Positions 1,865 through 22,858 of a stretch of 22,858 nucleotides of DNA are shown here, one piece after another. Position numbers and translations under genes: made by a program. Each line of letters begins with the position of its first letter. Within the stretch, counting starts at the first letter, position 1. The stretch is from Bugula neritina. Taxonomy: Eukaryota; Animalia; Bryozoa. Location of the stretch: positions 152,838 through 175,695 of the forward strand of contig CAXIUT010000057.1 of assembly GCA_964035545.1 (NCBI GenBank), in the 5' to 3' direction. The notes under the pieces are model-generated. The model saw only the letters and a program-made list of their open reading frames with translations, was not told where the DNA came from and ran no database searches.

Positions 1865-3045
1865 TCACATGATTCTTCGATAAACAGTTGGCGATACTGC
1901 CTGTCTTCCCTGATTCTATGGTCTATATAGCAGACCTCGACTTGGTTTGACCATCTCTTCACTTGTCAATTTGTTCTGAACTGGTCTTTACTGCCTCGGT
2001 GATTTGCAGCCTTAGTTTTATTTTAAATTTTGATGGTTTTGATTGGCAAGATTTATCCTTGGTCTTGCCTTATCCTCAGATACAATTTTTCTTAATTATG
2101 GTGATTTTATGTCACTTCTTTCTTGCTTCAATTCCAACTTGCTCTTTGATTTTAACTGAGGTAACTTTTGCTGGATCATTTTAAGTATTCTCGGACAACG
2201 AATAGTATTCAATAGACTGATACTTCCTTCTTATGAACCCTGCATATATTGAAATACCGTGTCTTTGATCATTTATGCAGCTGATGGTCTTTCTGAACTC
2301 TTAACTTGAAGACAACTTCGAATCATATACCACAAACGACGAGAATATCCACTAGGAATAGGATCACAATATCCGCTATTAACTTTTTTACTCAATCCTG
2401 GAAAATCATTAGCCATGAAAGGTGGTCTTAGAGCTGCACACTCATACAACAGACACCCCAATGACCAAATATCACATTTCCCATCATAGATCTGACCGTT
2501 CCATATCTATGGACTAGTATAGTAAGGAGTACCAGCCTGAGTTGATGCGAATCCTCCATCAGCCACTTTAGATATATTCATATCACCTAATTTAGCAACT
2601 CCATCGACAAAAAACACATTACCTGGCTTGATATCTCTATGCAATATTTTACCATTATGAAGGGTTTTTAGAGCTTTCAGCAGATCATAGGCTACCTGCC
2701 ATATAAAATTTTAATTAAAATGCCCCTTCTTTTATCTTTTACGTGACACCAGACCCTAAATAATCAGACAAATACTGCCAAATCACCACCATTTGCATAT
2801 TACATCACTATACACAGACTGGTAGTTTTGTTGTCAAAGAAGGCATCATGATATGAAATAACGTTAGGTGAGCTGATGGATGCCAATAGACGGATTTCAT
2901 TGAGTGCACCATCGCGTTATTTATCACTCAGACCATTCATTTTGATGATTTTGATGGCAAGAAGAGAGTTGTTCTGGTCTTTTACCTGGATCACGCGACC
3001 GAAACTGCCACTGCCTAGTTATTTCACTGTCTAATATTTTTACAT
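1865..3045 (-). CDS. NIMA-related (NEK) Ser/Thr kinase, about 386 aa; intron 2756-2775
   Basis: MEKYETVKELGSGSFG, AIK, ALNEIRLLASI, LCIVMEYANGGDL, LHRDIKPGN, KLGDMNISK, TQAGTPYYTSPEIW, CDIWSLGCLLYECAALRPPF. LNEIRLLASI and GDMNISK are typical of ciliate/algal NEKs. Confidence 0.93.
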
Positions 3046-3165: not shown

Positions 3166-4242
3166 TCATAATTCAGACTATTATTTAATTATCTATGGAA
3201 TTGGCTATTTAGGTTATTAAATAACGTTTTATGGCATATAGGATGACTATCCGATGGTTTTTGCTTTATTACTAACAAACCATCTTAATTTATCGAGAGT
3301 AAAAACCATCCCAAAGACTCTTTTCTTACCATAGCATATCTACACCAACTAAGGCACCCTTCCAACCATTCTATCCCCCATTTCCTAAACCTAAACATCA
3401 TAAACCTTCACCACCCCCTTCTTCCTCTCCAACTACAACGCCTTCCTAACCAAATCAACATCACCAAGCGAACAACGCTCGCATCTCTTCGCATAAAAGT
3501 AAACAAACCCGCATCTATCACTACCCATCATCTACATCAACTAATTCCGACCGATATACTGATCACTACTATCCCAAGTAAATACATGTCGCTATAATTT
3601 ACCACCCAGATAGTTCGATACCTGCCTCTACACCTATTCCCATTTATATCCATTTCCACAAACATATTTATTCATTATTTTATCTTTCATCTATAAAATC
3701 CAACACCCGAACTGCCCGCCCATCATCTCATACAACACCTTGCTCAGATACGATGGATTTTTTATATAAAATATTCGCTTCTACTGATAGTTGACAACCC
3801 GCGATAGAATGGGCAAACTCTACTACTACAAAATAACAACAACCCATCCTTTTTCATCTTTTAGCAGAGAAACAATACTACTTATCATTCCACGTCCATC
3901 GTCTCTGTCAATAAGATCGTTATCCACCAAAAATCTATTCTCATCAATTTTTGTTATTTAAGAACTAGAAACCACATACAAACTTGGATACTCTGTTACG
4001 TTCATATATTGGCACAAGATCTGATCTTTGCTGCAATCTGTTATTCCAAGGTGTAGATCTGTGTTGGTAATGTTTAGATATTTCTGGGTAAAGGTTTGAG
4101 AATGAGGACATTCCGGGTTGTTCAGAAGAAGATGAAATGAAGTCAGGGAGCGAAGGACTAGTTGGATATTTGTTGAGGTTATTTCGATTATTCGAGAGGT
4201 TGCTAGCCAAAGGAGAAACAGACTCAATAAAAAAATCTTCAT
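3166..4242 (-). CDS. Divergent PDI/thioredoxin-fold ER protein, 358 aa, intronless
   Basis: Signal peptide MKIFLLSLFLLWLATS; first Trx-like unit (NPECPHS...DCSKDQILC...VTEYPSL); second unit FVYFYAKRCERC; C-terminus ...KEESEL, similar to KDEL. The frame is free of TGA throughout. Confidence 0.75.
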
Positions 4243-4307
4243 TGTTGTATATTAACTATATATATATGAGATTATTCAAAATATATAAATAAATAAAGCA
4301 GATAACA

Positions 4308-5174
4308 TCATTTATTACACTGATTACAAAACTACCCATAATCCGATATCATCCTCGTAGTATCAACAACACCTTCTCTATCACTATATCTCCCAAGATC
4401 GACCCACACTCCTTTCTATTTACACCTCATACAAAAAAACCTCACCCTCTCCCCCGACACCTCCTCACACCCAGCACACCTACAACCCCCACTAAAACTC
4501 CTATCTCTGAAACACTTGATTCGATGCTCGTTCAAACAAGATATATGAAAGACATGATGATTGGAACAATTCAACATTATTCTTGGCTGCTATCCATAGC
4601 GAGTAAAGGTAGAGCAATATGAGCATAGCTAGTTTAACCTTTTTTTTGCGAAGAAATCAGGACCCTACCACTTGGATAGCGATTGGTCTTGCTTTGCTGC
4701 GCGGATTGAATCGTTGTCCAAGATTGAACGAATTGGTTAGGGTGAGACCTTGTTATTACTTTGATATGGATTTTAGTTTTGAACAGGCATGTTGTTTTGG
4801 ACAGGCATGTTTTGAACAGGCATGTTGTTTTGAAAAGGCATGTTGTTCTGATAAACATTGTTCTGAAATGAATGATTATAGTATCCTGGCTCCTGCGGCG
4901 GAAGGCTACATCAACCATAATATTACTAATTCGGATGCGGCGGCAGAGGTTGAGGCGGCAATAGCGGAGGCTGCTGACTATTTCTTTGACTTCTTTGCCT
5001 ACACCGATAGATACAATATCCAATCGTCATGATAGCCCCAATGAAAACAACCCAGCCAAACCATCCTCCCCCATCAGATCGTCTCTCATCTCTCCAATAG
5101 TGAAAGAACTGGTGCTGTGATTTGAGACAGGTAACCGAAAGGATGAAAAGCAATAAAATTGATAAACGAATCAT
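4308..5174 (-). CDS. Signal peptide + single TM + Pro/Gln/Asn-rich linker + RING-H2-like finger (putative membrane E3 ligase), 281 aa; intron 4906-4926
   Basis: MIRLSILLLFILSVTC-LKSQH; TM WFGWVVFIGAIMTIGYCIY; QPPLLPPQPLPPHP; then CSYC...LNCSNHHVFHISCL...CAGC followed by further CxxC pairs (CMRC, CNQC). The 21-nt GT-AG intron removes an in-frame TGA. Confidence 0.8.
4777..4850 (-). repeat. Coding tandem repeat (15/18-nt units) encoding QNNMP[F/V] x4 in the RING protein linker
   Basis: Repeated (A/C)AGGCATGTT(G/T) units on the + strand translate on the minus strand to QNNMPFQNNMPVQNMPVQNNMPVQN. Confidence 0.85.
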
Positions 5175-5225
5175 ATGAATATTATATAAATAGTTAACTA
5201 TTACTAGATTGTAATATAGAGATAA

Positions 5226-5594
5226 TCACTCAGATGTATTTGGATTGTTTTTTGAGAAATCGGTTCTGTAGAGTGATTTCGGGGGGTAGTTTAGTCCTTA
5301 GTTATATCCGAAATTGTTTACATAACGAAGCGTATTTGTTTGACTATTTTTGTTCTATGATTATGAGTGTTTCTTTAAAAAGAGTTCATTCATCTGATTC
5401 TATAGCTGCTTTTGCTGCTATGCCGATTTGCAGCAATGATATCCGCAAATAATAACAAAAATTAACACAGCAATCAAGAAGACAACGATCGATATGAGCA
5501 AGCCTTCAGGTGTTTTTTTGAAGAGTTCATGCACCTCGTGAAGACAACTTGTCGATGCAATCAGAACTAGAAATATCAGAAGAGAATGGAACAT
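5226..5594 (-). CDS. Small single-pass membrane protein, 122 aa (CLHEVHE type)
   Basis: MFHSLLIFLVLIASTSC-LHEVHELFKKTPEG-LLISIVVFLIAVLIFVII-CGYHCCK, then an Asn/Tyr-rich tail. Intronless, ATG 5594 to TGA 5226. Shares CLHEVHE with the 6098-6462 gene. Confidence 0.85.
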
Positions 5595-5674
5595 ATTAGC
5601 TTAAGTACTTTTATATGATATATATATTTTTGAAAAATATCATAAGAAGCAATTGGATGCTATCAATGAGATCG

Positions 5675-6042
5675 TCAGGAGTTGAGATGGGAGTTGATTT
5701 GTTCGGGATGTGCTGAAGGCAAGTTATTTTGCTTGTTTTTGGCAATTTCGTTATCATGTATTAGATTTTCTTCTGGTATTTATTGAGTTTATCTTGGTAC
5801 TTCTTCCACTGGCATCAATCTATTTTGATCAATATTTACTCCTGTTCATCAGGCCAATCAGAAGCAATCATCAAATAGCACCATTCCCACCCTCTCCACA
5901 AAAAAATAAACACAATCACAGCACTAACAACAACAATCACCAACACTTCTCCAACTGTAGAAGCAATCAACTGCTTCTCCTTTAAACAACTAACCAGAAT
6001 CATCAAATTCCCTAGCATCAAGAGATGACTTCTCCTGAACAT
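5675..6042 (-). CDS. Small single-pass membrane protein, about 115 aa; intron 5820-5839
   Basis: MFRRSHLLMLGNLMILVSC-LKEKQLIASTVGE-VLVIVVVSAVIVFIFLW-RGWEWCY. Splicing the 20-nt GT-AG intron avoids the TGA reached by the unspliced frame and gives an acidic tail (ELMPVEEVPRETQEIPEEN...HLNS). The 3' exon frame is inferred. Confidence 0.72.
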
Positions 6043-6097
6043 ATCAATAAATAATAATTATTTTTGATAATGATGTTCTATATTTGGATGACTATTA

Positions 6098-6462
6098 TCA
6101 ATAATTTCTTTGTTGGTACTGATTGCCCTGATACTGATTTCCTTGGTTATACTGATTCATGGGATTATTTCCATAATTATTTCCATAGTTAGGATTGGCT
6201 CCGTAGTTGTTTCCATAGGTAGGCTCATTCAAAGGATTAGGCGTCAAATGTCTGCATAAAAAACAAACTACCCCTGATTCTGATTGGCACCACCAGCAGC
6301 CATACAGACAAGACAGCAACAGATCAAGAAGATAATAAGAGCAATCGAGAAGATAACGATGGCAACTATGTTACCAGCTTTGCTTCCACCAAATTAGTGC
6401 ACCTCATGGAGACAAGTAGCCGAGAAGATCAAAGCTAGGATGGTTAGCAGGCGCATGAACAT
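6098..6462 (-). CDS. Small single-pass membrane protein, 114 aa (CLHEVHE type) with N/Y/G/Q-rich tail; intron 6252-6271
   Basis: MFMRLLTILALIFSATC-LHEVHEFGGSKAGN-IVAIVIFSIALIIFLI-CCCLVC. The 20-nt intron joins this to HLTPNPLNEPTYGNNYGANPNYGNNYGNNPMNQYNQGNQYQGNQYQQRNY. Confidence 0.87.
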
Positions 6463-7567
6463 TAGATTTATGTTGATAATTATTAGATTTATCTAATCAT
6501 CAAAATCATTCAAATAAAATTATATTCATTATCAGTTTTATTTAATTTGTCAAGAGTATTATTGGATTATTTGGGTTAGATTATAGTTGTTGTCGACATC
6601 AAGATGAGGCTGTTATCGTTGTTTTATGGTAAAGGGCAAAATGGTAGTTTTTGTTCTTGATTTTGTTGTTTGAATGCTTTTTAATAATTTATCTATTCGA
6701 TTATGCTCATAAATAATCAAATAGATAAATATCTGAGAGCGATTTTAGTTATTTGGTACAATTCATCATAAATAAAAACAATTTATTTCATTTGAAATTT
6801 AAATAACATCTTAATTTACTCAATAAGTCATAATATTTAACAGTTAGTTCATCATTTTCTTTTAAATAAACTATTTTTATATCAAAATAATAACTAAAAA
6901 TTGAAATATCTATTTATTATTCGATCGTTCTATGACCTTTCACAATGCAGGAGGATATCAATATCCATATTACCATGTATAGTCATAATAAGATGATTTC
7001 TATTTATTCATCTCTTCATCATTCTTTCGATCACCTTCTTATAACTTTGCTGACTCCTATCCAACAGAATCAGATCGTGATTGACAGCATTAATTTGTAA
7101 TGACCCATACAATTAGTATGATTACCATGAAGTCAAGAATATAAGCAAGACAATAATTTATTATTCAACCTACGAAGCTGGTTTTATACAATATTCTGTA
7201 GTTGAGAAGAAGTTAATGAATGTAGCTAGTAGTCTAAGCATAGCTGAATATTTTATTTGCAGATAAATATTATAATAAATACTGAACCTAATTATTATAT
7301 CAAATTATTTTTATTAAACAATTGATTAAAATAAAAACTAACAATATATAGTCAAAAATTGAACTTATTCTTATGTTTTTTAGATGATTTAAAGAAGAAA
7401 TAAAAAATAAGAATATTTGAACTTTACTAAAAAATATTAATTTTCACATAATTTCTATAATTATATCGAACTAATTTAAGTAGATTATTGTTTGTTTGTT
7501 AATTCATACAAAAATAGAAAAATAATAAATTTCTATAAATATCGATCTTAAAAAATTAATCTAAAAA

Positions 7568-7837
7568 TCATATATTACTAGCTTCCATGTAATACCCCCC
7601 ATCGAGTTCGACATATATTCTTTCCTATCTGGTCAACTAAGAAACATAATAAGTCTATCGAGGACAAGGCTAGCAACAAAAAAAGAACCACAATAATACC
7701 ATCGATATCACGCCAAAAGATATTACCAATGTCTGAATAAAATTCCGACATTAAGAATCAGTAATTTTAGAATTATTATTCGGTATATTTTTAAGAGGAG
7801 AGACGATGACTAAGAAGAAGAGCAATATTGCTATCAT
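7568..7837 (-). CDS. Small single-pass membrane protein, 89 aa (LKNI/PCP/GGYYM type)
   Basis: MIAILLFFLVIVSP-LKNIPNNNSKITDSECRNFIQTLVISFGVISMVLLWFFF-CCEPCPRETYY...DGGYYMEASNI. Clear paralog of 8548-8850. Confidence 0.82.
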
Positions 7838-8547
7838 GAAGGTTTTGATAAAATTATTAAATTGATTTGATTGAAAATGGAAAATATATTTATGATAAAG
7901 ATGTTAAAAATAAATAAAAAAACTAACTAAGTAATTTTTATAATAAAATTATCTATTTTTTGAATATTTTATAATGTTTGAAAGTTTGAATTTACTTCTT
8001 TTTATTTATAGTTATAGTAGATTTTTATTATAAAAACAGTACTTTCTATGATAAATAAAATATAATTTTATTTACTATTTAAAGATAGTTAGTCTATGAA
8101 AGATAAGATCGTCTTTGAAATACTCAAAAATAAATACTTTTTAAAATTATTTATCAAGATAATAGATATTAATGTAAAACAATCACAAACTATTGGATAA
8201 GATCAAGTATAGTATCATAATATGTCTCAAAAACTATAGTATCACAAGTTTTAGTAATTAGTAAATCACCAAAAAGAAGCCTTCTCATTGCTTTTCTATA
8301 AAAAGTAAAATAAAAAAGAAAAAATATAGATTTCTGTTATCAAAACAAAAAATATCAAAAAAATCATAGAATAACTAACATTGTTAACAAAAATATTAAT
8401 AAACACTTAATATTAATACATCAATTCAAAATATTATCTTTTTATTTTTTCTTAAAAGCTCTCTTAAAGAGAAATCTATCAATCTAACTAATCTTCTTAC
8501 GAAATAAAAAAGATAAAAGACCATTTGAGGTCCTATTCGATAATTAA

Positions 8548-8850
8548 TCACATCATATACCCTCCACCATACATATAATACCCTCCATAGAAGTTAACAT
8601 GCCTCCTTCCCATCGATCGTCCATACTCCTCCTCCCACCGGTTCTCTTCCGGAGCATGAATCACAGTCGTCTAAGGACAAGGCTGAAAACAGACAGAATG
8701 ACATACATAGATAAACGATAGTATTCCCAAAGATACTACCAAAGCCTGCATAAATTACTTACCCGGATCTACATCACTAGAACTACTATTTGATATATTT
8801 TTGAGAGAAGAAACAGCCACCAAGAAGAGAAAGATGACTATTATGCGCAT
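8548..8850 (-). CDS. Small single-pass membrane protein, 100 aa (LKNI/PCP/GGYYM type)
   Basis: MRIIVIFLFLVAVSS-LKNISNSSSSDVDPGKEFMQALVVSLGILSFIYV-CHSVCFQPCPETT...FYGGYYMYGGGYMM. Shares LKNIxN, FxQxLVxSxG, PCPxT and GGYYM with 7568-7837. Confidence 0.85.
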
Positions 8851-8976
8851 ATTATTAATCTGATAAAAAATTAAACTATTTATCGCTTATTTTACTATAA
8901 ATATCATGAACGAATTCAGAAGTTTAGATTTAATATCATAATTCATAAAATAAATATTTGATAAATTATAATTCAA

Positions 8977-9613
8977 ATGCTCACAGAACGACAATTAAAA
9001 TAAACATAACTCGATTAACTCTACGACTGGGTCGACTCTTTTAACCTATCAAGACCTAAAAAGTATCAATGTTGGTATTGAAGAAATATCAGTCGAGATT
9101 TCAGTGATGCTATCATGATGGCATAAGTCGTCAACGAGTATTACCCTAAAACAGTTGATCTACATAACTATCCGCCATCCAATTCAGTCAAAGGAAAAAT
9201 CAACAACTGGAATACTCTCAAAAGTATCTAAAAATACAAATATAGATAAAGTACTCAATAAAATAGGATTGCACTTGGAAAGCTAAGATTGTCGAAGACT
9301 AAGCAACAGCGTACCGATGGCCATCTAAGCAGTCCTATATGAATTCAAATTATTGATAGACTAAAACAAAAGATAAAAAGAATAACAACAGAGAGACTAC
9401 CCTGACCCATTCGGCCTACCCACTCAACACCGCCCAGATTCCAAGCAAATTCCTCCTTTAGCATCAAAAATGTACACAACATCGAAGGTGTAGTAGTTAC
9501 GTTAGGTGCTATCTCTACTAAAAGAGAAGATATCACTGGTATAACATTCAATTGAGAGAAAAGATGCCCATATTCGTGAATTAGAGGATACTTTGAAGAT
9601 GTATTCTATTTGA
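8977..9613 (+). CDS. SPEF1: SPEF1/CLAMP calponin-homology microtubule-binding ciliary protein, 197 aa; introns 9063-9083 and 9224-9245
   Basis: LYDWVDSFNLSRPKKNISRDFSDA, AEVV...YYPKTVDLHNY..SNS..GKINNWNTLKNKVLNKIG and a C-terminal coiled coil (LSLLKEKISLVEHSIERKDAHIRELE) match the SPEF1 pattern. Confidence 0.92.
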
Positions 9614-9650: not shown

Positions 9651-12123
9651 ATGAGCAGTCGATTACAACATCTACATAAAAAGAAACAAGAATATCATGA
9701 ACACCATCAAATCCCACAAGAAGGACCCACTGTCATTAATAAATAACACAACAGTAGAAATCAACCAGTTAAACATCAAGTTGTCGCCAGACCATATTTC
9801 GCATCCACAAATATCGTTAAACCCTTCGACAGAAATTCATATAAAAAAGGATAGCCATCATACCCTCCACCCTAAAGTCTATACATCTCCAGAGATACAT
9901 AACTCGACCCGAAGATCATAAGAACATCTTGTACAGCTCTACCAGTACAGCCATCAAAGACATCATTTCCAATTTCACTATGGATAACTCCCTTTGCTAC
10001 CTAACAAGTATGCACAGTAGAACTAACTGCACCTCTAAGATGCAACAGATGCAAAGCCTATGTCAACCCTTACTTCCAATACGATGGAACAAGAAAATCA
10101 GCCACCTGCAACCTCTGTGGCGTCCGATTTACTATAGACTAAGCTGTCAATAAGTTAAATATGACTAGCACTGAAGTAAGCACCTAAAGTATATTGGATT
10201 TCAGAGTATCTGATAAATTCTATATGAAAAAAAGAACAGATATTATCAAAATAATGGTACTCGTATAATTAACTATGCCAATGATATAACAAGGCATCTT
10301 CGCTACAGTTATCGATAGTCTAAGAAGCGTATTCTAAAGCCACTAATTCTAAAACAAAATTAGAATCGGTATTTGCTTCTATAGCGATCAAGGAGTAGGT
10401 TTCATCAAAGTCAACTAATAATAAAAACAGCCAAGCGTATTCATAGTTCCACAAGGAAAAGGCGCTTCCGGTTGCTGCCCTCTCAGTGAATAGTAACTAC
10501 TACTCGATCCCAATACCCAAAGAGATCAAATGATAAAAGTACTTGATTTCTTGCAACAGTATTCATAATTTATATGGAAACAGGGTCGCTTCTCACACAC
10601 AGCTAATTATGTATATGCACTTCGATGTCTCAAAGATTGCTATGATCAGTAAACCGGTAGAATCGTACTCTTTTCTCTGCTTGATCCGAGATCACCTCCT
10701 TGCGCCATTCGCATCAGAAATTAGGAATAAAATAAAAATCCTTTAAGACCTCTGCACTTGGAAGGACACTAATATGCCAGAGAACTGCTTAAAGCTAGAA
10801 TAGGTGTATAGCATTTTATCTTCTCGAAAGATGCCTTAGTATCTCATTAACTCTCTACTGTCCATTATCTATCATCAACGACAGGTGGCAAACTGCATCC
10901 CTACTTCTTCTTCAATTCATAAACGTACTCTAAATTTAATACAGTCATGGCCAACATCTATACTACTCGATTTTCCACTCCCTAACCAAACCATGTTTCT
11001 ACGACGTCGATTTCACTTGCAGAGCATCAAATGGATTATCAGTCAGTCGATATGGTCCACCTGATGGATTGAGATAGTGTCGAGATATCGGGTTGAGTAT
11101 AGTTGATAGCACCAGTTCTTTTTCTATTGAATTATAGCAAGAATAAAAGTATATTTATTGTGATTTAGATTGGAATAAAACCTTGGAGCTTTTATTCAAT
11201 TTGCAGCCATGTATACCACTGGTTCAGGCTAGCGTAAAATCAGAGTGATAAGCTATAAATTCGAAGTAACCAATCGACCAGGAGCACTATACTAATCAAT
11301 CGACTACCTAACCCTCTCAAACATCTTATTAAGAAACTACAGTTCAAAAATAATCAAAGGAAGCGATCCCAACAAAACCAGAATAGACGCCATCACACAT
11401 CTAGGCGCAATAATCGGATAAGCCCGCAATCGATGTCAATCAACTGTTTCAGTTGGCCAGGTATCAATTGCCCCGAGTATGGCCTGGAGTCTATCCTACT
11501 TCAATTCGATACTCAATTCTAGATTATTCCTCAATTGGATGAAATTGTCACCAGATCCGAGAATGTACATCTACCTGCAAATACAATCTCTAAATCCATA
11601 CTTTTTTGCATCAAAATTCTATCCAAGATTATACTCTCTTACCCTCGATATCTATGATGTCGAAGAAGGATAACCTATGCCTGGTGATTTTATTGATTAA
11701 GAAGGAGAAGAAGATAAAATTGCCATCTTGCCACCCAGTTTAGCATTGACCAAGCAATCATTGACTGATGATGGAGTCTTTCTTGCTGACTGCGGTGAAG
11801 AACTGACTATCTATGTTCAACCCAACGCTGATCAAGAACTACTTGAAGATCTTTTCGGAACAACCGATCTCAATGAAATCGAAAATGGAGAACTACCTTA
11901 ATTATAATCATCTCACAGCATTCGAGTAGCAAATATAATTGGTTAACTTAGACGCAGAAGCGCTCTAAATGGAGGAATGTATCAGCCAATAATTATCAAA
12001 ACAGGATTGAAGAAAGGTCCATACAGTGAATCGATTGGTCAACTCCTTCGTTAGGATCACTACTAATGCCCATTTTCTAAATTTTTGTAAGAATTGCAAC
12101 GTTTAGTAGTGGTTCCTAAATGA
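9651..12123 (+). CDS. SEC24: COPII coat subunit Sec24, about 810 aa; introns 10925-10944 and 11149-11168
   Basis: Zn finger PLRCNRCKAYVNPYF...CNLCG, SSTTGGKLH, CRASNGL, IQFAAMYTTGSGERKIRVI, FYPRLYSL, and gelsolin-like LTDDGVFLADCG. Spliced length is divisible by 3. Confidence 0.92.
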
Positions 12124-13749: not shown

Positions 13750-14626
13750 TCAAACTGAATTTTTCATCATGTTTATCAAGACTCCAACCAGAGCTAGCAA
13801 CAACAGGAAGAGAGTAATATCCATGCAGAGTTTATTCGGACGACGATACTAGATAGTAAAATAAAATACATGGGTTAGAACCTATGCTAGATCAGTCCTC
13901 GCTTTACTAACTTTTTTATCAACTTTTTATACTTTTAAAAGATTATCCTGTATACGTCCGCCAGTCTAATCTATAGTATTATTGGCCATTTTCATCTGAT
14001 CTTTGATCTAACGATTCAAATTGATAACTTCTTCCAATCCCACCTCATCCAATTCTCTATCTCTCCGACCGATTCGTTAGAAATTCTATTCATCTGATAG
14101 ATCTACTCGATCAGAATCGTCTTAGTTCTTGACTAATTCTATATTTGAGTTAGATTTTACTTTTTTTCATTTACTGGAGGGTTTGCTTTTGCTGGGGCGG
14201 CTGATATCCTCCATCTTAAGAACTCTTTACATCATTTAGTAGTTATAAACAATTCTATAATGTTTTTTATCTATTTTCTAGGATCTTTTTATGAGCCTCA
14301 GGATTTTTACCTTTAAGATCATTCTTTTTTCTTTTAGCAGCTTCTTTCAAGATATTTTCACATCTCTTGATATCTTCTCTAACTTCTTGATTTGTTTTGA
14401 TATCATTGGCACTAGGTTTAAATCCTTTTTTCGATTATTTTTTTTATCTTATTTGCTGACACTATCTAATAGTAAATATTCTCTCCCTAAAAGTCTAAAT
14501 AATCGAGTTAAATTATGATTTATCAGTAGCTTGCAACCCAGGTATATACTTAACCCCAACCCAACCCCAACCCCAACCCCAACCCCAACCCCAACCCCAA
14601 CCCCAACCCCAACCCCAACCCCTCAT
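13750..14626 (-). CDS. SYP7-like Qc-SNARE, tail-anchored; introns 14139-14160 and 13849-13869; 5' end uncertain because it runs through the internal telomeric tract
   Basis: Helical N-domain (DKSEFNSIIETFRERI...IKTNQEVRE), SNARE coil (RDRELDEVGLEEVINLNREIKDQMKMANNTIDET...KVEKVDKKV) and C-terminal YRRPNKLCMDITLFLLLLALVGVLINMM, resembling the SYP7 'RxxxNFCID+TM' end. There is no ATG in exon 1 upstream of the N-domain except 14626, on the far side of the repeat tract. Confidence 0.78.
14552..14622 (+). repeat. Internal telomeric tract, (CCCCAA)n, about 12 units with one 5-nt CCCAA variant
   Basis: AACCCCAACCCAACCCCAA...CCCC, in the same orientation as the left telomere. Confidence 0.97.
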
Positions 14627-22756: not shown

Positions 22757-22858
22757 TTGGGGTTGGGGTTGGGGTTGGGGTTGGGGTTGGGGTTGGGGTT
22801 GGGGTTGGGGTTGGGGTTGGGGTTGGGGTTGGGGTTGGGGTTGGGGTTGGGGTTGGGG
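22757..22858 (-). repeat. Right telomere, (TTGGGG)n on the + strand
   Basis: Perfect G4T2 hexamers to the end of the window, in inverted orientation relative to the left telomere. Confidence 0.98.

Follow-up and report, generated by a model that had tools for sequence, protein, structure and literature searches.

We analysed a stretch of DNA of 22,858 nucleotides (nt), referred to as the window, that is filed under the bryozoan Bugula neritina (contig CAXIUT010000057.1). Its minus strand carries, between positions 4308 and 8850, a row of six short genes, named A to F. On balance, we read them as lineage-restricted genes for small type-I membrane proteins, which belong to at least two groups and one of which, gene A, would also have a RING-H2 finger. 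They appear to lie on a telomere-capped macronuclear chromosome of a ciliate with the peritrich genetic code. The six open reading frames (ORFs) are real coding genes under purifying selection.

The nuclear code is the peritrich code, NCBI table 30, in which TAA and TAG stand for Glu. Both codons occupy invariant Glu positions in a Rab11-like GTPase (NEFNLES and GQERYR, in the contexts FTKN-E-FNL-E-SK and DTAGQ-E-RYR) and conserved Glu positions in a NEK kinase (MEKYETVKELGSGSFG; M-E-KY-E-TVK-E-LGSGSFG), and frames are ended by TGA alone. Three conserved genes have short introns, whose excision restores the conserved protein:

696-715: intron of the Rab gene, 20 nt, GTA..AG
2756-2775, minus strand: intron of the NEK gene, 20 nt, GTA..AG
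11149-11168: intron of the Sec24 gene, 20 nt, GTA..AG

Narrow distributions of intron length were described for three peritrich species, and introns with a length divisible by three are rare in most ciliates (PMC13685798). The predicted intron of gene A is of this kind, at 21 nt, and there is an in-frame TGA within it; five more introns were seen in the window, each of 20 nt.

The gene models were obtained by translating the minus strand of 4308-8850 with table 30, after removal of introns of 20-21 nt. The introns assigned to A, C and D are predicted ones.

5174-4927 + 4905-4308, minus strand: gene A, 281 amino acids (aa)
5174-5127, minus strand: signal peptide of A
5126-5061, minus strand: stub of A, the short segment after the signal peptide
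5060-5001, minus strand: transmembrane helix (TM) of A and YCIYRC
4906-4926, minus strand: predicted intron of A, 21 nt, GTAATATTATGGTTGATGTAG, phase 2, in the class of the validated 20-nt introns
4776-4851, minus strand: in-frame 18-nt repeat in the Pro/Gln/Asn-rich linker of A
4625-4467, minus strand: finger of A with a RING-H2 pattern
4433-4317, minus strand: extra CxxC..CxxC element of A
5594-5226, minus strand: gene B, 122 aa, intronless; signal peptide ending STSC, stub LHEVHELFKKTPEG, TM, CGYHCC, tail containing Asn and Tyr
6042-5840 + 5819-5675, minus strand: gene C, 115 aa; signal peptide ending LVSC, stub LKEKQ.., TM, WEWC, acidic tail
5820-5839, minus strand: predicted intron of C, 20 nt, phase 2
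6462-6272 + 6251-6098, minus strand: gene D, 114 aa; signal peptide ending SATC, stub LHEVHEFGGSKAGN, TM, CCCLVC
6252-6271, minus strand: predicted intron of D, 20 nt, phase 2
6131-6223, minus strand: repeats with periods of 12, 18 and 30 nt in the Asn/Tyr/Gly/Gln tail of D
7837-7568, minus strand: gene E, 89 aa; signal peptide, stub LKNIPNNNSK.. (sequon NNS), TM, CCEPCP, acidic tail ending GGYYMEASNI
8850-8548, minus strand: gene F, 100 aa; signal peptide, stub LKNISNSSSS.. (sequons NIS and NSS), TM, CHSVCFQPCP, tail ending GGYYMYGGGYMM

All six proteins begin with a hydrophobic leader of 13-19 aa, with small residues at positions -3 and -1, followed by L-K or L-H. The leader ends are SVTC-LK (A), STSC-LH (B), LVSC-LK (C), SATC-LH (D), IVSP/IVS-LK (E) and AVSS/AVS-LK (F). 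Then come a polar stub of 13-22 aa, a single hydrophobic helix of 20-25 aa, a Cys motif and a low-complexity tail. Among the six stubs, only those of E and F have N-glycosylation sequons (NNS in E, NIS and NSS in F). The three predicted introns are all of phase 2 and each is situated just past the TM/Cys edge; that of A holds the sole in-frame TGA of a 289-codon frame. Genes A-D lie close together, the spacers between them being 51, 80 and 55 nt long, and E and F are isolated in long AT-rich spacers. The initial annotation of this DNA had proposed six minus-strand genes (89-122 aa, plus one of 281 aa) with a common plan of leader, stub, TM and juxtamembrane Cys, variable tails and the peritrich code. 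Its gene lengths were reproduced exactly under table 30 with short introns. The plan was present in all six, with the leader ends and Cys motifs as quoted, and the tails were indeed variable and partly built of repeats. The code was borne out by the Glu positions of Rab and NEK. Two close His residues were seen in each of the stubs of A (5061-5126; QHQFFH), B (5502-5543; HEVHE) and D (6370-6411; HEVHE).

Public DNA contigs from three studies covered the stretch at 90-100% identity, and the variants between strains showed which frames are selected. The variant table comprised the best-supported 40 of 82 substitutions, plus 12 indels. Twenty of these substitutions were in the six coding sequences, and 14 of the 20 were synonymous in the predicted frame, one of them being a change from GAA to TAA, which is silent under table 30 only. 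The same 20 substitutions gave 2-8 synonymous changes in the other five frames (random expectation, a fraction of 0.21; P = 4e-6). The synonymous/non-synonymous counts were 5/2 in A, 1/1 in B (I>V), 4/2 in C, 2/0 in D and 2/1 in F (V>I). Conservative changes prevailed among the six non-synonymous ones (two I>V, one each of D>E, V>I, N>K and E>G), and the polymorphism omega, the ratio of non-synonymous to synonymous rates, was ~0.1 (14 synonymous to 6 non-synonymous). The variants of C came from a divergent haplotype. From the 12 listed indels, 11 were found in spacers; the sole coding one, a 3-nt deletion at 5926 in the Val run of C, was in frame.

In the tails of both A and D the repeat periods, 18 nt in A (4.4 copies) and 12, 18 and 30 nt in D, were divisible by three. 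The G + C content was 0.33-0.42 in the ORFs and 0.15-0.24 in the spacers, the drop lying no more than a few bases from the start and stop codons. Together, the frame-specific synonymous excess, the in-frame indel, the in-frame repeats and the G + C steps signify that the six ORFs are coding. Gene E was the weakest case, with support from its island of higher G + C content (0.33, against 0.15-0.18 in the flanks) and its protein similarity to F; the variant counts covered A-D and F.

Some or all of these short frames could also be chance ORFs, that is, the Ile-, Leu- and Phe-rich translation of AT-rich DNA in which TGA is the only stop. The window has dozens of ORFs of 70-250 codons that are antisense or in spacers, and ORF length alone is weak proof. 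Codon-usage log-odds and the G + C scores of the three codon positions did not separate the known genes from spacer ORFs in the window, and the polymorphism data came from A-D and F. However, the synonymous excess was confined to the predicted frames, the indels and tail repeats kept the frame, the G + C steps were sharp at the ORF ends, and the pairs B-D and E-F were similar as proteins with synonymous sites saturated or near saturation. We consider a chance origin extremely improbable. Short peritrich ORFs missed by standard-code annotation are, in this row, real and selected genes, and such coding status can be proven without RNA, from an excess of silent strain variants specific to one frame, from indels and repeats that keep the frame, and from G + C steps.

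Two pairs of paralogues were evident by BLASTP with composition correction, as the initial annotation had noted. B and D (E = 7e-12) had in common MF..LL, [ST]C-LHEVHE, G, IV.F.IA..IF.I.C and, in the tail, Y.NN[FY]G. E and F (E = 1e-11) had in common VS.LKNI, F.Q.LV.S.G, PCP and GGYYM. Both duplications are old. Between B and D, synonymous differences were saturated (proportion of synonymous sites changed, pS, 0.73), and the corresponding proportion of non-synonymous sites (pN) was 0.34 in the N-terminal module of leader, stub and TM and 0.55 in the tail. Between E and F, synonymous divergence (dS) was ~1 and its ratio to non-synonymous divergence, dN/dS, was ~0.45. The dN/dS check proposed for both pairs thus gave a value for E-F, the synonymous sites of B-D being saturated. 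A recent tandem expansion, if this was meant by the initial annotation, was not seen. The genes had also been described as fast-evolving, which did not hold: the paralogues are old, and the strain variation is mostly silent (14:6), as under purifying selection. The divergence between paralogues was concentrated in the repeat-built tails. Similarity between the flanks of E and F was uninformative, AT-rich DNA giving many matches of 60-67%.

Gene A joined the B/D pair. Its BLASTP comparison with D gave E = 0.002, hhalign of A against B/D gave 88.6% (P = 2.6e-6, 70 columns), and with segment-preserving shuffles z was 7.3 for A-B and 5.4 for A-D. A also shares with B and D an Asn/Tyr-rich region past the TM. 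The link of C to A, B and D was weak (hhalign 42-51%, BLASTP E = 0.6). E/F were compared with the others by hhalign, with values of 27% for B/D, 1.7% for A and 12% for C, and the BLASTP E-values between groups were 1 to 80. From these similarities, the row would consist of at least two groups, {A, B, D, perhaps C} and {E, F}, with C doubtful; this division is part of the overall reading that we favour by a small degree. The first group has a leader end of the form [ST]C-L[HK], a stub containing His, a TM, a C-x-[YL]-x-C edge and Asn/Tyr-rich tails. The second has stubs with sequons, a C-x-x-PCP edge and GGYYM at the C-terminus.

A single origin of all six, as one family of palmitoylated adaptors, is a possibility that we doubt. 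In this scenario, one ancestral gene would have provided a common targeting exon (leader, stub and TM), to which unrelated tails became attached. In line with it, all six genes share the junction of a small residue and [CSP] with L-[KH], the order of parts, the strand and the adjacency, three have a phase-2 intron directly after the module, and E/F had weak positive shuffle scores against A, B and D (z = 2.8-4.8). However, the shuffle control destroys generic signal-peptide features, so that any pair of proteins of this build should reach z values of 3-4. The junction fits the general rule of signal-peptidase cleavage, which calls for small residues at -3 and -1, and a leader of this type, a TM and nearby Cys may be present in any small type-I membrane protein. 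With the low hhalign values and the between-group E-values given above, a family of six members does not follow, because E/F were left unlinked by hhalign and the shared traits are generic. The single family of the initial annotation was therefore retained in part: the genes are tandem and co-oriented, with the pairs B/D and E/F and with A joining B/D, but C is doubtful and E/F are unlinked (at most 27%).

Beyond its N-terminal module, gene A is probably a membrane-anchored RING-H2 ubiquitin ligase, as judged from a pattern of metal ligands. Residues 177-229 (or up to 244) of the table-30 translation matched, by regular expression and as a pattern match only, C-x2-C-x15-C-x3-H-x2-H-x2-C-...-C-x2-C. 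The pattern calls for eight Zn ligands, ordered C-C-C-H-H-C-C-C and canonically spaced. Past the first Cys pair there is a Gly-Glu dipeptide, its Glu being encoded by TAG; this dipeptide and the H-x-F-H-x-x-C-L core are at positions that we take to be typical of RING-H2 fingers. A second element, CxxC..CxxC, comes after the finger. The ten nearest ESM Atlas clusters with a family assignment were all of the RING clan for the RING half of A (0.83), which is a lead only. Plant ATL and small animal TM-RNF ligases have the ligand pattern C-x2-C ... C-x(1-3)-H-x2-H-x2-C ... C-x2-C. Like them, A begins with a hydrophobic anchor, continues with a low-complexity linker and has the RING-H2 ligands, presumably on the cytosolic side. 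It differs from them in a leader that looks cleavable and a separate TM, in the odd spacing of the last Zn pair, in the extra CxxC..CxxC and in a stop-free half unmatched in Pfam and PDB.

Relatives of the six proteins were searched for in several ways. A Pfam hmmscan with ten stop-free pieces, including the full leader-to-Cys modules of A, B and C, gave no match reaching the cut-off. A match of DUF202 to the N-terminus of A (22.0 bits, cut-off 23.4) was rejected, as it consisted of two hydrophobic helices. A profile of the N-terminal modules of A-D had zero hits at E <= 1e-3 among 1.84 billion protein representatives. Word searches with residues 1-82 of A, with its RING half and with a piece of the neighbouring Sec24 gave no candidates, in a length window that excludes full-length kin. 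A scan of JGI metagenomes with a piece of B found no relative, and in exact look-ups this piece and an antisense ORF were not on record. The genes are, on balance, a lineage-restricted orphan set; ciliate genomes commonly encode small membrane proteins of such narrow distribution. The term undescribed, used in the initial annotation, agrees with the absence of a matching described family in the Pfam, PDB, profile and metagenome searches.

Several points weigh against the reading of the row as two groups of lineage-restricted membrane protein genes with one RING-H2 ligase. None of the searches made (word, profile, metagenome, Pfam, PDB) found relatives outside the locus. The similarity of A to B/D rests on hydrophobic segments, which are prone to false positives in profile methods. 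The last Zn pair of the finger is spaced unusually, and the second half of the finger (57 aa, stop-free) had zero Pfam hits and nothing relevant by phmmer against PDB. The variant evidence comes from the 40 best-supported of the 82 substitutions. Finally, the matching public contigs are all DNA-like and without joints, and read straight through the predicted introns, as is usual for DNA; the intron of D, for example, is crossed in this way by DNA contigs of the public runs X1 and X4. Among the public runs listed for this stretch, none is recorded as RNA, and run X10, presumed to be RNA, gave no contig.

For the type-I reading, general knowledge of signal peptides and of type-I proteins suggests the following. 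The small residue would mark the site after which the leader is cleaved, the stub would be luminal or extracellular, and the tail, with the RING of A, would be cytosolic. The Cys residues at the membrane edge would be candidates for S-acylation. Gene A would represent the anchor of the first group (leader, stub and TM) joined to a cytosolic RING-H2 finger, and B and D would be RING-less paralogues of this anchor. E/F, for their part, may be a pair of small glycosylated membrane proteins with no relation to the first group. Such a row adds orphan small single-pass membrane proteins and a predicted membrane RING-H2 ligase located beside RING-less paralogues.

It is conceivable, though unlikely, that B and D share the membrane of A and modulate A or its substrates through the shared stub and TM, as partners or competitors. 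Still less probable is the more specific idea that a ligase anchor was duplicated in tandem and that the RING-less B, D and perhaps C pair with A and determine which substrates it takes or how active it is. If true, this would be a ciliate-specific modular ligase/decoy system in one compact gene row. The predicted ligase beside RING-less paralogues is a tidy, unproven candidate for ligase regulation in a little-studied ciliate group, and the row has no bearing on a long-standing open question.

Known classes of small membrane proteins were compared with the row. Short adaptors with PY motifs form one such class, including Shisa-like/STMC6, CYYR1, WBP1, VOPP1, Comm/PRRG4 and Rcr1 (PMC5578492). 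The six proteins resemble this class (PMC5578492) in being short and single-pass, in having a signal peptide and Cys within or close to the TM, and in tails that contain Pro and Tyr. They could accordingly be imagined as ciliate counterparts that recruit Nedd4/Rsp5-type ligases to surface proteins, with the same general build and with one ESM neighbour of the N-terminus of A annotated as 'shisa-5-like', whose score of 0.77 does not rise above noise. However, no [LP]PxY motif was present in any of the six, and the stubs, of 13-22 aa with 0-1 Cys, are unlike the luminal C*C*CC*CC domain of Shisa-like/STMC6 proteins (CYYR1, WBP1, VOPP1, TMEM92). In the hmmscan of the ten stop-free pieces, no Pfam family of the Shisa, WBP-1, CYSTM, FXYD or DAP10 type appeared at E <= 1. 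At the level of sequence this reading is largely refuted, and it is the least probable of those weighed here.

CYSTM proteins are similar to the six in small size, a Cys-rich TM edge and soluble parts rich in Tyr, Pro, Gln and Gly. In CYSTM proteins the low-complexity part comes first and the Cys-rich TM is C-terminal, without a signal peptide, whereas the order is reversed here, and no Pfam hit was obtained. The comparison with Shisa, WBP1 and CYSTM suggested in the initial annotation thus failed, since the six have neither a Cys-rich ectodomain nor [LP]PxY nor a Pfam hit.

FXYD proteins have a signal peptide, an ectodomain of ~15-20 aa, one TM and juxtamembrane Cys, as the six do. The juxtamembrane Cys of FXYD proteins is S-acylated. 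Architecture and size would allow B-F to be small regulatory subunits of a transporter or pump in the manner of FXYD, and B had sub-threshold Pfam hits to small single-pass proteins (MAP17 and Psg1; E = 0.15). Nevertheless, the F-x-Y-D motif was absent from all six stubs and no family hit was significant. The long, low-complexity tails, with their many Asn, Tyr, Gly or acidic residues, are atypical of FXYD proteins. Nothing ties the row to a pump, the PMCA gene of the window being beyond an internal telomere tract. We regard such a regulatory role as very improbable.

Between the genes D and E, we recognized a candidate relic of a seventh copy:

6949-7241, minus strand: candidate relic 'G'; tblastn with B matched 7233-6949, E = 0.003 (within the window)

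In one frame, 'G' reads TTSYIHE, then Gly, a TGA and a good TM helix, followed by NECCQSR and, rich in Tyr, the end SSYYDYTWEYGY before a stop; an ATG with a leader-like stretch is in a different frame. A trial of every single GT..AG intron of 15-40 nt yielded no ORF with signal peptide and TM. Because no canonical intron joins its frame to the nearby ATG and leader, 'G' looks decayed, and it is possibly a decayed B-like copy. Its G + C content was 0.32, against 0.15-0.23 around it. Further copies in the long spacers of the window were sought and none was convincing.

The window is the whole contig (22.9 kb), with C4A2 repeats at 1-134 and G4T2 repeats at 22758-22858. A further, internal C4A2 tract is found at 14553-14623, in the orientation of a left telomere of the right-hand 8.3 kb, which suggests either an alternative fragmentation site or two joined chromosomes. 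The six-gene row is situated on the left 14.5 kb, left of this tract. No tRNA gene was found by a scan of the window.

Downstream of A, at a distance of 65 nt and on the same strand, there is a gene with its own signal peptide:

3166-4242, minus strand: PDI-like secretory protein with the thioredoxin-like motifs CPHS and CERC

Its first 94 aa had no relative in the JGI metagenomes. Near-identical DNA of the locus (4200-9000) was found in the public runs X1, X3 and X4, which have three organism labels and come from three studies. The ciliate may be an associate or a contaminant of the organisms labelled in those runs. X1 contained a second haplotype, ~6% diverged over gene C. In X3/X4, very high depth (up to 259) was observed at 6615-6775 and 7259-7419, originating from matches of 21-31 nt to long, deep contigs; these peaks are most likely chance matches in AT-rich DNA to other material.

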